From the sequence record MH595538.1: a stretch of DNA of 64,000 nucleotides. The stretch is one strand, 5' to 3'. The notes beneath the pieces were generated by a model, which was given only the letters and a program-made list of their open reading frames with translations, was not told the origin of the DNA and did no database searches. Below are positions 51,969 to 54,989 of the stretch, piece after piece (the first letter of the stretch is position 1; every line of letters starts with the position of its first letter). A program made the position numbers and the translations under genes.

Positions 51969-52571
51969 ATGACATTGCCCATGAGAGACGAAGAGTATAA
52001 AGAATACATCGTCGTAAATGCTGTTGATCAGCAACCTAAGGCCGAGAAGCATCTGCCGGAGGCATCTATAGATAAAAAGATATTAGAACGCATAGAGAAG
52101 CTCCCAGAGGCTCTATTGGAAGCACTGGATGATTGGATACTAGTTCCCGATGCTAAGCTCATACCCAAGCTAATGGAACTCTCAAAAGCTATTGCTCCCT
52201 TATACGGGAAACAGTCTCTGAAGTTACTGAGAGGTTTCGGCGGCGCTCCAGAATATCAGGATACAATGGGTTTAGAATTTGAATCTGGGTTTTGGCGCAG
52301 AGGACTCAAAGCTAAGATAGGCGATGAGTTTAAATACGCTAATGAAAGACCATTGTCCATGACGACCGATTTAGATATCGCTGCTGCTTTTGGAGATAAC
52401 GTAGTTAGAACCACGCAAGAAATTAAGATGTTCGATAACAACCTGCCTATCACTAGCGAACTATCTTACATTGTCTCTAAGCGAAGAAACCTTGGTGAAA
52501 CTAAAACGCAGAAAGAAGTGGTCTTATTCCCGGGCGAATATACTTTCTATATCGTACAAAAGAAAAGATAA
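51969..52571 (+). CDS. Putative ADP-ribosyltransferase (R-S-E clade)
   Basis: KLLRG (Arg), PLSMTTDLDIAAAFG (S-x-T/S motif followed by A..F), TQKEVVL (QxE). Confidence 0.6.
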   Translation: MTLPMRDEEYKEYIVVNAVDQQPKAEKHLPEASIDKKILERIEKLPEALLEALDDWILVPDAKLIPKLMELSKAIAPLYGKQSLKLLRGFGGAPEYQDTMGLEFESGFWRRGLKAKIGDEFKYANERPLSMTTDLDIAAAFGDNVVRTTQEIKMFDNNLPITSELSYIVSKRRNLGETKTQKEVVLFPGEYTFYIVQKKR

Positions 52572-52605: not shown

Positions 52606-54225
52606 TTATTTATTTAAGAAGTCATATAAGGCTGAGAAACCTGCGGCGTCGAAGCCAACAAAGTCCATTGAGTCAGGATCCTTAGGATCTGCAATAGACG
52701 CCCTCGTTGCCGTAAAGCCGATAACTGCCTGCTTTACACGAGTGTTTTTAGCACGGCGATAATCACTCAGTAACTTCTGGGTGTGATAACGACCATTGGT
52801 CTCATTGTCCGTTAAGAAGATGATCTCTTCATAAGTTTCTTGCTTACAGACTTCTTCATGCAGAAGAATCTGCAGGGCATTATCTAGATGAGTAGGGCCT
52901 CCAGAGTGACTTTCTACGCCCTTACAGAAGTCGGTCAGGGTCAACTTAGGATCCAACTCATTCAGTCTAAAGCACTGATCGTTAATTAAGAAAATAGTCG
53001 CGTTCGGTTCCGAGCGATACATGATGTAAGCTAAAGCAGCGGCCGCTGTAAAAGCACTAATAGAGCTATCATTAAGTTTATCATGCATTGAACCAGAAAC
53101 ATCGATGAAGATTGCCTTGCGTTTACCGTTACCTTTGAAAGCCTCAAAAGACTTAATTAGGTTAACGCCTAGCGCATCGACAATTTCTTTTCTAACGCCC
53201 CAGGTATTACTGTCTCGGAAACCATGCCCTGCTTCATACTGGCAACGAGCAAGAAATGCCTGCCATGGATGTACACGCAATCCTTCTTTCAGACGATCTA
53301 CTGCTTGGTCGCGCAAATAAGGTTCATCGAATACACCTCGAGATTCTAACGTAGCTAGGTTTCTAATAAAAGCAGTATCTGGCATGCGTTCTTCGAAAAG
53401 AGCTTTCCAGATATAGTTTTTGGATAAGAACTCCTTAGGTAGGAACTCACGAGGGAAGTCATAATGACGAATACCTTCTAGCGCTAGCTGCTGTCCATCA
53501 GCTTGATCAGGATCCATGCTGTATAACAAGTCCTTCATTTTATAGCGCTCTGGGATCAAGGTATCATTATGTTTTGAGCCAGTGACATATCCCATCCAAG
53601 CTTCCATCTCTGGAGAATCCGGCTTGATATGAATATTGCGCAATACATCACGATGGGACCATCCAAAACGAGACTTATACTTTTCACATTGGAAAAGTAC
53701 CTGATCTGGAGTCTTAGAAGTATACCACCATGCAAATGCTTTCTTAACTGCCTTGCCCCATCCACGGAACATAACGACGTAAGATACAAACTCTAAGAGC
53801 AGCGATCCTGTCTTAGCGACTTCTCTAACGCCATATTTGAGAGCTATCTTACGCACTTCTTCTTCCGGATGATTAGTATAATATGCAAGCAAGAATAAAG
53901 TTGGAGAGTTAGAAGGTGCACGTCTGCGCGAAACGACATCCTTAATGACCGTCATCACTTCTTCGAAATCTTCTACCGTTTGTACCTTGGAATTAATAAA
54001 ATCCAGAGCATTTAAAGTTAGCTCTTGTGACGTAGCATAATAGGTTGGTGATGACGTACCTAGAATTAAGAAGCGCTCTAGGAATGTTTTAAGACGTACA
54101 TCGAACACCATGCGTCCTTCGTTGTTTTTGGACATCTCATCCTCACGACCTGGGATCGCTTCTTTTGCATTTACTGACGTAGGTGATGCTGACTGATCTA
54201 CTTTAAAGTTTCCGTAACCGGACAT
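52606..54225 (-). CDS. rsr: Ro60/Rsr TROVE-vWA RNA-binding protein
   Basis: FLERFLILGT...TYY, RGWGKAVKKA..WY, KYKSRFGWSHRDVLR..H, AFIRNL and VHP motifs; vWA MIDAS DVSGSM; IFLTDNET. Confidence 0.93.
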   Translation of the reverse strand: MSGYGNFKVDQSASPTSVNAKEAIPGREDEMSKNNEGRMVFDVRLKTFLERFLILGTSSPTYYATSQELTLNALDFINSKVQTVEDFEEVMTVIKDVVSRRRAPSNSPTLFLLAYYTNHPEEEVRKIALKYGVREVAKTGSLLLEFVSYVVMFRGWGKAVKKAFAWWYTSKTPDQVLFQCEKYKSRFGWSHRDVLRNIHIKPDSPEMEAWMGYVTGSKHNDTLIPERYKMKDLLYSMDPDQADGQQLALEGIRHYDFPREFLPKEFLSKNYIWKALFEERMPDTAFIRNLATLESRGVFDEPYLRDQAVDRLKEGLRVHPWQAFLARCQYEAGHGFRDSNTWGVRKEIVDALGVNLIKSFEAFKGNGKRKAIFIDVSGSMHDKLNDSSISAFTAAAALAYIMYRSEPNATIFLINDQCFRLNELDPKLTLTDFCKGVESHSGGPTHLDNALQILLHEEVCKQETYEEIIFLTDNETNGRYHTQKLLSDYRRAKNTRVKQAVIGFTATRASIADPKDPDSMDFVGFDAAGFSALYDFLNK

Positions 54226-54255
54226 AATGTTTTCCTCTAGTGGGCAGGATATACG

Positions 54256-54290
54256 ACTATTACTCTCAGCCCGAAGGCTGAGAGCATAGT
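54256..54290 (-). promoter_or_regulatory. Stable UUCG hairpin in the Ro60 leader
   Basis: ACUAU-GCUCUCAGCC-UUCG-GGCUGAGAGU-AAUAGU, about 30 nt upstream of the Ro60 start; no U-tract follows. Confidence 0.55.
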
Positions 54291-54326
54291 TACTTGCGTT
54301 TACACCCTAAGGTGCTTAATTGGTGC

Positions 54327-54474
54327 TGATCTTTCTGAAAAGAACAAGTATTTAGCAAAGATACGTTGCTCTACCAACTGAGCTACCCTCCTTGCGGAGA
54401 GACGGGACTTGAACCCGCGACCAACGACTTAGCAGGTATAACCTTCACTATTCGGCTCTTATTCAAAAAGATCA
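54327..54474 (-). ncRNA. Y RNA (YrlA-like) no. 1 with circularly permuted tRNA domain
   Basis: Long terminal stem with GCCGA. Then T arm GCGGG-UUCAAGU-CCCGU, acceptor-like hairpin CUCUCC-GCAA-GGAGGG, and D arm UAGCUCAGUUGGUAGAGC, in the order T, acceptor, D. Confidence 0.85.
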
Positions 54475-54502
54475 ATCAGGGCTGACTATTACTAGTCAAA
54501 AA

Positions 54503-54674
54503 TGTATCTTGTTCTTAACCCAGACAAAAAGGTGTCCAAGGATGGTGTATGGCCTTGTACTCTAACCAACTGAGCTACGGCGATCATAAAGATTCACCGG
54601 CAGGACTCGAACCTGCGACCCCAAGGGTTATGCAATAACCTTAAACAATCGGCCCGGACTAAGAACGAGATACA
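54503..54674 (-). ncRNA. Y RNA (YrlA-like) no. 2 with circularly permuted tRNA domain
   Basis: Long terminal stem (UGUAUCUCGUUCUUAG/UUAAGAACAAGAUACA) with GCCGA. T arm GCAGG-UUCGAGU-CCUGC, hairpin CGGUGA...UCGCCG, D arm UAGCUCAGUUGGUUAGAGU, CCUUG/CAAGG stem. Confidence 0.85.
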
Positions 54675-54682
54675 CTTGGTGT

Positions 54683-54761
54683 ACCAATACGCTAGAACAA
54701 GTTGTGTGCTAACGGGCATTTGACATATGTAACGTTAACACTTCGGCTCTAGCATATTGGT
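54683..54761 (-). ncRNA. Short Y RNA-like hairpin no. 3 (YrlB-like, no tRNA domain)
   Basis: ACCAAUAUGCUAGAGC/GUUCUAGCGUAUUGGU stem, the same AGAGCCGAA motif as RNA 1, and a GUGUUAACG/CGUUAGCAC upper stem. Confidence 0.7.
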
Positions 54762-54947
54762 GAACTCTGTTTTTTATTTGATGTGATTATCACAAGGGGC
54801 TAGTACTTCATCGACTAGCCCCTTGATCATCCACGTCGCGCAAAGCAGTTCATCGGGAGAATGATGATGATTGAAGCGCCCAAACAACAACCGTACTTTA
54901 CAGCATATTATTAGGCGGAACTGGTATTTTTTCTTAATAACTTCAGA

Positions 54948-54965
54948 TCTATATAACCATGATGA
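54948..54965 (+). promoter_or_regulatory. Putative phage early promoter motif, copy 4
   Basis: TCTATATAACCATGATGA. Confidence 0.7.
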
Positions 54966-54989
54966 GTTTAAACCGTAAAGGATATCGAT

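Follow-up and report, generated by a model that had tools for sequence, protein, structure and literature searches.

The YrlA class of Y RNAs was defined by Chen et al. 2014 (PMC4201824), and its structure was reported by Wang et al. 2018 (10.1101/312249). Such an RNA consists of an end stem that binds Ro60, with the motif GNCGAA in its 5' strand, and of a permuted tRNA-like module whose acceptor stem is closed; the prototype from Salmonella has no CCA end and no anticodon loop (PMC4201824, 10.1101/312249). RNAs of this kind were already found by the same authors beside Ro60 in 254 bacteria and 22 phages (PMC4201824, 10.1101/312249), and according to a review of jumbo phages, a small fraction of these viruses have a TROVE protein accompanied by a tRNA-like partner (PMC7824862). 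Here we analyzed a window of 64,000 nucleotides (nt) that, by sequence identity, corresponds to positions 1-64000 of the genome of Vibrio phage BONAISHI (MH595538.1), a phage published after the YrlA surveys. Judging from its sequence, the minus strand of 54327..54474 encodes a YrlA-class Y RNA, predicted to be 148 nt at full length and hereafter called Y RNA 1. Its kind is already known, and this member is unannotated. It is very probable that Y RNA 1, with a Ro-binding stem and a permuted tRNA module, is a partner of the phage Ro60 protein, and that its segment CUGCUAA is the relic of an anticodon arm, located in the loop of the hairpin known in this family as V.

BONAISHI is a 289-kb phiKZ-like jumbo phage of Vibrio coralliilyticus with a PhuZ-type tubulin. 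The presumed protein partner of Y RNA 1 is encoded by ORF49c (52606..54225, minus strand), annotated as 'RNA binding protein'. This protein is a Ro60/Rsr orthologue with the Pfam domains TROVE and vWA_Ro60 and a match to phrog_850. It is related to the Deinococcus radiodurans Rsr protein (PDB 2NVO) with an E value of 3e-55, and it also matches human RO60 and Xenopus Ro60. At E<=1e-10, Ro60 homologues were found in 352 of 50,697 phage records, nearly all of them actinophages, with BONAISHI as the sole Vibrio phage that has a canonical Ro60. YrlA genes are expected no more than about 4 kb from a Ro60/TROVE gene and on its strand; here, Y RNA 1 has the same orientation as Ro60, and its 3' end lies 101 nt upstream of the start codon. 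Three Y RNA genes follow each other here in tandem on the minus strand, just upstream of and co-oriented with the Ro60 gene, in an interval of 764 nt (54226-54989) that contains no open reading frame (ORF) of at least 60 amino acids on either strand. None of the three is listed in the annotation of BONAISHI; the genome paper reports no tRNA, does not mention Y RNAs and describes ORF49 just as "RNA binding protein" (PMC6207643).

The 5' end of Y RNA 1 is one strand of a terminal stem (54462..54474) that forms 13 base pairs (bp) with 54327-54339 in both the minimum free energy and the centroid fold. It is followed by a bulged helix with GCCGAA in its 5' strand (54451..54456), a Ro60-binding motif of the GNCGAA type (PMC4201824), and by a 10-bp stem ending in GGU, so that the end-to-end stem of the fold comprises 13, 6 and 10 bp. 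The last three nucleotides of this strand belong to the junction motif GGUUAU (54438..54443), of which GGUUA is invariant in all 31 Ro-linked Y RNAs described below and which includes, as UUAU, the YUAY found in the family ahead of the variable region or V stem-loop (PMC4201824). After UAUAC-CUGCUAA-GUCGU, discussed further below, comes the variable loop UGGUC (54419..54423), whose 5 nt (positions 44-48) are the same as in E. coli tRNA-Lys and provide C48 for the Levitt pair with G15. The T arm (54402..54418; GCGGG, loop UUCAAGU, CCCGU) is found in the sequence, by Rfam and in the fold. Next is an acceptor-like hairpin (54386..54401; CUCUCC-GCAA-GGAGGG), closed by 6 bp and capped by a GNRA tetraloop, which is likewise seen in sequence and fold as well as by R1, a covariance model presented below. 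The module ends with U8-A9, the D arm and A26 (54367..54385); the D arm itself (54383-54368) is made of GCUC, the loop AGUUGGUA and GAGC, and is followed by AACGU and the 3' strand. Opposite the Ro-binding site, this 3' strand contains CUUGUUC (54342..54348), a conserved motif that also occurs in Y RNA 3, in the Rfam consensus and in viral relatives. The predicted structure has a minimum free energy of -51.5 kcal/mol (z -4.6), and none of 200 shuffled sequences folded as well.

An initial annotation of this stretch, made from the sequence alone, had described the order T arm, GNRA-capped acceptor-like hairpin, D arm, and the lack of a CCA end. Sequence and fold bear out this order, which is that of YrlA, and no CCA end is present. 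A canonical tRNA, with its open 7-bp acceptor stem, cloverleaf order and closed anticodon arm, is not what the sequence shows, and ARAGORN calls no tRNA. The nucleotides for tertiary contacts in a tRNA are all there (U8, A14, G15:C48, G18G19, U54U55C56, A58 and G46), as in YrlA, in agreement with the proposal that this permuted module presents a tRNA elbow. Its D arm had been matched to that of tRNA-Lys, and the 19-mer 54385-54367 is indeed an exact copy of positions 8-26 of E. coli K-12 lysT. However, the same 19-mer occurs in E. coli tRNA-Thr(CGU) and is near the YrlA consensus. It is therefore a generic bacterial D arm that is not Lys-specific, and for the same reasons a specific descent from tRNA-Lys is rejected.

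The Rfam YrlA model (RF02553) matches Y RNA 1 at 54335-54446 over its full length (model positions 1-114) with 59.3 bits and an E value of 8e-13. In the whole 289-kb genome it gives two hits only, of which Y RNA 1 is the best and Y RNA 2 the second. Since 59.3 bits lies below the gathering score of this family, a default Rfam scan is empty at the locus, and the element becomes visible only under an E-value threshold. The R1 model, built from 13 Y RNAs of the type described below with BONAISHI excluded, also scores Y RNA 1 at 59.3 bits. The Rfam tRNA model gives only a weak local match (model positions 9-63).

Y RNA 1 shares with YrlA of Salmonella Typhimurium (RF02553; 6CU1) a position beside the Ro60 gene (rsr in Salmonella) on the same strand, an end stem with GNCGAA, and the succession of T arm, closed 6-bp acceptor-like stem and D arm, with all tertiary nucleotides and no CCA. 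The two differ in their setting: in Salmonella, YrlA follows rsr within the rsr-yrlBA-rtcBA operon controlled by RtcR, whereas Y RNA 1 is upstream of Ro60 and neither rtcB nor rtcA was found in BONAISHI. The terminal stem is much longer in the phage RNA, which also has 14 nt with an anticodon-like loop where Salmonella YrlA has a 3-nt CUA bulge. It has been shown experimentally that TruB and DusA modify Salmonella YrlA (PMC4201824). For this reason, the suggestion of the initial annotation that the phage RNA could engage tRNA-modifying enzymes is reasonable by homology; the nucleotides that would serve as substrates (U55, U16, U17 and U20) are present. The V-type YrlAs of P. fulva, R. etli, actinobacteria and mycobacteriophages (Chen et al. 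2014) have in common with Y RNA 1 the GGUUAU/YUAY motif, a segment at the place of V, a 5-nt variable loop and the T arm. Most of them close the hairpin with 3-4 covarying pairs, whereas that of Y RNA 1 is degenerate. As further differences, the host of BONAISHI is Gram-negative, and the phage builds a phage nucleus.

The segment at the place of V in Y RNA 1 (54424..54439) resembles an anticodon arm. Counting back from G49 (54418), positions 32-38 (54435-54429) read C-U-G-C-U-A-A, in the tRNA register, as had been pointed out initially. Base composition leads to an estimate that about 7% of 7-mers fit Y32-U33-NNN-R37 by chance, and the 7-mer alone is weak evidence. To look at homologues, viral contigs were searched for GGTTAY, a gap of 12-24 nt and the start of a T arm, a pattern that leaves the hairpin itself free. 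The 24 loci that also encode Ro60 were kept and contain 31 distinct Y RNAs. In this Ro-linked set, the spacing between GGUUAY and the T stem has a sharp maximum at 25-26 nt, which corresponds to tRNA positions 27-48 plus the motif. Of the 31 loops, 27 have U33, 28 have R37 and 23 have A38, whereas positions 34-36 are variable. In the 23 RNAs with a formed stem, defined by three or more of the four pairs 28-31/39-42, U33 and R37 occur without exception, and A38 and Y32 are each found in 19. Homologues thus carry the same loop pattern, so that the 7-mer of BONAISHI is not a product of chance.

The stem closing this loop covaries. Among the 21 gap-free sequences, pair 31-39 is CG (10), AU (8) or UA (3) and never unpaired, and pair 30-40 is GC in 12 cases, UA in 4 and CG in 3. 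These two pairs display 18 double-sided changes, with a covariation score reached by none of 500 shuffles, and sliding the partner by one column lowers the pairing from 85% to 42-48%. The same hairpin was seen in 12 of 14 cases in a bacterial set of 11 Ro60-linked loci, including cyanobacteria and a myxobacterium, and the layout is the same in Mycobacterium phage Sparky and Gordonia phage Cashline. In its typical form it has a covarying 3-4-bp stem and a 7-nt loop, followed by a 5-nt variable loop that is commonly AGGUC or UGGUC. The hairpin corresponds to the stem-loop that Chen et al. 2014 named "V" and drew as a variable arm. By its register, it looks like an anticodon arm plus a normal 5-nt variable loop. 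The register, the 5-nt spacer, the conservation of U33 and R37 and the covariation are the reasons to read V as an anticodon-arm relic. In Y RNA 1, R1 places CUGCUAA exactly in the loop columns with one stem position deleted, and the Rfam tRNA model, which is independent of R1, aligns the same arm. An alignment with homologues had been proposed to see if CUGCUAA is conserved: the register and U33/R37 are kept, while the triplet varies and an identical loop occurs in a single relative. This relative is the viral Y RNA of contig L164, where CUGCUAA is closed by AUCUA/UAGAG; an identical triplet in one RNA among 23 is not significant because the flanks are fixed.

Whether the loop is closed in BONAISHI itself is less clear. 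In strict register, only the pairs C31-G39 and A30-U40 can form; bulging of C41 adds a U-G and an A-U pair and extends the stem from 2 to 4 bp. According to ViennaRNA, CGUU could pair in trans with AACG, located 3' of the D arm, at a cost of 3.3 kcal/mol. Because the stem is degenerate, the loop of Y RNA 1 may be open, and it is probably either open or weakly closed. The initial annotation had seen no closed anticodon loop, which is what thermodynamic folding favors, but a weak closure is possible and is the arrangement chosen by both the Rfam tRNA model and R1. It had also placed the 7-mer in a single-stranded linker. The strand may well be unclosed in this copy, but the segment is the homologue of the conserved closed V hairpin and not a novel design. 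From the sequence comparison, the unclosed strand of Y RNA 1 appears as a decayed version of this conserved element.

Several observations weigh against this interpretation of Y RNA 1 and its loop. In ViennaRNA, the cis anticodon-like fold lies 7 kcal/mol above the minimum, with pair probabilities of about zero, and a small ACC/GGU hairpin is favored that consumes bases of the variable loop, on which the tertiary contacts of a tRNA-like fold would depend. Neither the hairpin nor the loop signature is present in the paralogue Y RNA 2 or in the closest complete orthologue, on metagenomic contig L003: their 7-mers in loop register are GCAUAAC and UAAUAUC, respectively. Both RNAs have instead clean 5-bp trans stems (CCUUG/CAAGG in Y RNA 2 and GCUUU/AAAGC in L003) in exact tRNA register and without a hairpin. 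The nearest orthologue of Y RNA 1, on contig L002, is cut inside the T loop, and its 5' half was not recovered. The Rfam YrlA score of 59.3 bits is lower than the gathering score of 69, a cut-off that is a database convention and no biological criterion. In Y RNA 1, GCCGAA is followed by UAG, so that 2 nt precede the next G versus 0-1 in GNCGAAN0-1G. No RtcB or Rnl2-type ligase was found in BONAISHI, and among public sequencing runs no RNA run containing the Y RNA locus was found.

Could the anticodon-like loop have been selected for a function of its own? The initial annotation had suggested that the RNA could engage anticodon nucleases without being a translation substrate, a hypothesis to which the strictly conserved U33 and R37 of the family, combined with free triplets, lend some indirect encouragement. 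The V stem-loop would then be a maintained mimic of the anticodon arm with interchangeable 'anticodons', which BONAISHI presents unclosed, and the Ro60-Y ribonucleoprotein (RNP) would be a decoy, a sensor or a docking site for enzymes that read the anticodon arm, notably in tRNA-cleaving antiphage systems. We consider such a role unlikely for the family, and equally doubtful for this phage, on the basis of sequence comparisons. Candidate targets would be modification enzymes, such as the t6A machinery, and antiphage or toxin tRNA nucleases. The t6A machinery acts on tRNAs with U36-A37, a combination found in 12 of the 23 loops with a formed stem. In these loops, invariant U33 and R37, the frequent A38 and Y32 (19/23 each) and a free triplet are what is expected of a preserved U-turn loop and not of a mere spacer, but a conserved loop shape could equally serve folding or contacts with Ro60 or an effector. 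The commonest triplets, UUU (4), UGU (3) and GUU (2), account for 9 of the 23 loops, occur on two different stem backgrounds and coincide with the three main targets of AriB, the PARIS nuclease (PMC12409363). It is also known that phages answer tRNA-cleaving defenses with tRNAs of their own (PMC11464382). However, the triplet counts come from related sequences that are single substitutions apart, in a U-rich loop, which makes the nominal P of 5e-7 invalid; as the sequences are related, the apparent enrichment in Lys/Thr/Asn triplets is kept as a lead only. Moreover, AriB cuts the stem at 40/41 and requires U39, whereas Y RNA 1 has G39 and the triplet GCU. Its stem is degenerate, and the element is missing altogether from Y RNA 2 and the L003 RNA.

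Two further explanations would deny Y RNA 1 the status of a Y RNA, and both appear highly improbable. The RNA could be a permuted pre-tRNA, to be converted into a working tRNA-Ser(GCU) by opening of the acceptor loop and joining of the ends, as in some algae and archaea. Its topology does match that of permuted tRNA genes, as already noted for YrlA (10.1101/312249), and the junctions of tandem tRNAs have the same order of elements, with R1 scoring the one of L003 about as high as Y RNAs. The M. smegmatis YrlA is even cut by RNase P and receives CCA (PMC4201824). But permuted tRNA genes yield working tRNAs once processed, whereas the acceptor stem of Y RNA 1 is closed and short and its ends form the Ro-binding stem. 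This acceptor stem has 6 bp and not 7, which is likely why Salmonella YrlA remains uncut (PMC4201824). The anticodon stem is degenerate, ARAGORN finds nothing, and the tRNA model reaches 20.6 bits versus a gathering score of 29. The variable loop has 5 nt, while tRNA-Ser requires a long variable arm, and we know of no bacterial splicing endonuclease. A working permuted tRNA-Ser is rejected on account of the 6-bp acceptor stem, the degenerate anticodon stem, the 5-nt variable loop and the absence of an ARAGORN call. It is just as hard to believe that the locus is the decaying debris of a former tRNA gene cluster, functionless and unlinked to Ro60. In favor of decay, the relative L003 has real tRNAs at the same place, and BONAISHI is devoid of tRNA genes (see also PMC6207643). 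Against decay stand the perfectly kept elbow nucleotides, the closed GNRA hairpin, the 13-bp terminal stem, the Ro-binding motif with its partner 3' motif, the z of -4.6, the full-length match to the YrlA model and the presence of three Y RNAs in a row beside Ro60.

We thus favor a YrlA-class Y RNA that works with the phage Ro60. By analogy with the family, Y RNA 1 would be co-transcribed with the two other Y RNAs and the downstream Ro60 gene and would bind the Ro60 ring through its bulged stem. The tRNA-like module would dock a tRNA- or RNA-handling host factor, which the RNP could tether or gate. Elsewhere, the sole demonstrated partner of a Ro60 RNP is PNPase, in D. radiodurans, Salmonella and Thermus phage phiLo (PMC4201824, 10.1101/312249, PMC12135203). 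Phage phiLo is the best experimental model of a phage Ro60 RNP, which binds and slows the host PNPase (PMC12135203). Like BONAISHI, it has its own Ro60 and at least two Y RNA-like genes (Yrl1 and Yrl2) directly upstream, with CGAA in a bulged stem (PMC12135203), and the CGAA motif has been tested by mutation (PMC12135203). As described, its Yrls are stem-bulge-stem RNAs for which no tRNA-like module is reported (PMC12135203); they are closer to Y RNA 3 than to Y RNA 1. The Yrn1 RNA of D. radiodurans, which tethers Rsr to PNPase, is similar to Y RNA 1 in being bound to Ro60 and in having a T-arm-like stem-loop. It differs by the orientation of the arms, the lack of a full D arm and the conservation of both strands of the Ro-binding helix (PMC4201824). 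A link to phage RNA repair was rejected: with no RtcB or Rnl2-type ligase in BONAISHI, a phage-encoded repair module is no part of this system.

As to its origin, a model in which YrlA derives from a tRNA dimer is cited in 10.1101/312249. In the BONAISHI relative L003, the order is tRNA-Asn, tRNA-Arg, YrlA-like RNA, second Y-like RNA, hairpin and Ro60. The junction of the two tRNA genes scores as a Y RNA core, with 28.7 bits for the Rfam YrlA model and 56.9 bits for R1. Such a score for a tandem-tRNA junction is a prediction of the dimer model, and it leads to reading the hairpin as the anticodon arm of the first tRNA. V would then be the retained anticodon arm of the upstream tRNA in the ancestral dimer. 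The two tRNA genes of L003 (1-141) are real ones, with the anticodons GUU and UCU, and lie directly upstream of the Y RNA.

Upstream of Y RNA 1 are its two companions. Y RNA 2 (54505..54672, minus strand) is YrlA-like according to Rfam, fold and R1, with a long terminal stem and the 5-bp trans anticodon stem mentioned above in place of a hairpin; it is matched by RF02553 at 54529-54648 (35.8 bits, E 5e-6) and by R1 with 54.5 bits. Y RNA 3 (54683..54761, minus strand) is by fold and sequence a YrlB-like stem-bulge-stem RNA with the motifs GCCGAAG and CUUGUUC and without a tRNA-like module (-33.4 kcal/mol, z -5.7). Its terminal stem comprises 16 bp and its upper stem 9 bp, with an exact GCCGAAG facing ACAACUU-GUUC, and it is similar to YrlB of Salmonella and to the Yrls of phiLo. 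Downstream of Y RNA 1 and just before the ribosome-binding site and start codon of Ro60, the sequence contains a strong 10-bp hairpin capped by UUCG (54263..54284, minus strand). This element may serve in processing or stabilization or, lying between the Y RNAs and the mRNA, may be a leaky terminator. A hairpin is found at the equivalent place before Ro60 in L002 and L003 as well as in the phages pir03 and sm033. ORF48 (51969-52571, plus strand) is tail to tail with Ro60 and has no match in Pfam or PHROG; L002 encodes a counterpart of 199 amino acids at the equivalent place. For the upstream neighbor ORF50, a word search found no relatives. No tRNA gene was found in the whole BONAISHI genome with ARAGORN and the Rfam tRNA model.

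The closest two Ro60 proteins (42-43% identity) are encoded by the metagenomic contigs L002 and L003, which are syntenic with BONAISHI. A peptide-pattern scan of viral contigs with a single protein query found nothing, and the same scan with a 3-protein alignment found one locus, cut at its N-terminus; a metagenome scan found nothing by protein and nothing by exact 36-mer. Two public runs of one 2019 study contain contigs that are 93-97% identical to BONAISHI at 53900-54113 and 54664-54888, flanking the Y RNA genes, which indicates that a close relative of BONAISHI was present in that sample. Over the Y RNAs themselves, these two runs gave generic T-arm and D-arm pieces only. The syntenic Vibrio jumbo phages pir03 (L094:7163-8713) and sm033 (L095:7149-8699) have a TROVE-like gene for 516 amino acids with about 20% identity to the BONAISHI Ro60 over the N-terminal half and no recognizable vWA match. 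Upstream of it, Rfam detected no tRNA-like Y RNA in either phage, and in pir03 small ORFs of 30-36 amino acids are annotated there.

Other loci show how close Y RNAs and tRNAs can be. Upstream of Ro60 in L071 (3880-4800; IMG/VR contig 3300038492_000235), an array can be read in two registers. One gives a series of Y RNAs. The other gives tRNA-like units with their own 7-8-bp acceptor stem (e.g. GCUGUCUG/CAGACAGC), a D arm, a T arm and a perfect anticodon arm with the loop CUUCUAA, the Ro-binding hairpin being inserted at 26/27. These units look like interleaved tRNA/Y RNA chimeras. In Streptomyces phage Sham (L217), Y RNA cores with 57 bits for R1 are located at 134-215 and 1206-1290, among oddly labeled annotated tRNAs, and one overlaps a 62-nt 'tRNA-Ser(cga)'. 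It may be that some features near Ro60 annotated as tRNAs in actinophages are in fact Y RNAs.

With Ro60 and three Y RNAs, the BONAISHI locus amounts to a complete Ro60 RNP cassette, carried by a jumbo phage that forms a nucleus and infects a coral pathogen. In such a phage, the phage DNA is walled off in the nucleus, and translation and the host tRNAs are outside. This raises the question of where a phage Ro60 RNP acts. Finally, the V hairpin, in which the triplet drifts but the typical features of an anticodon loop persist, bears on the tRNA-dimer model for the origin of YrlA and on the question of which effector the tRNA-like module serves.

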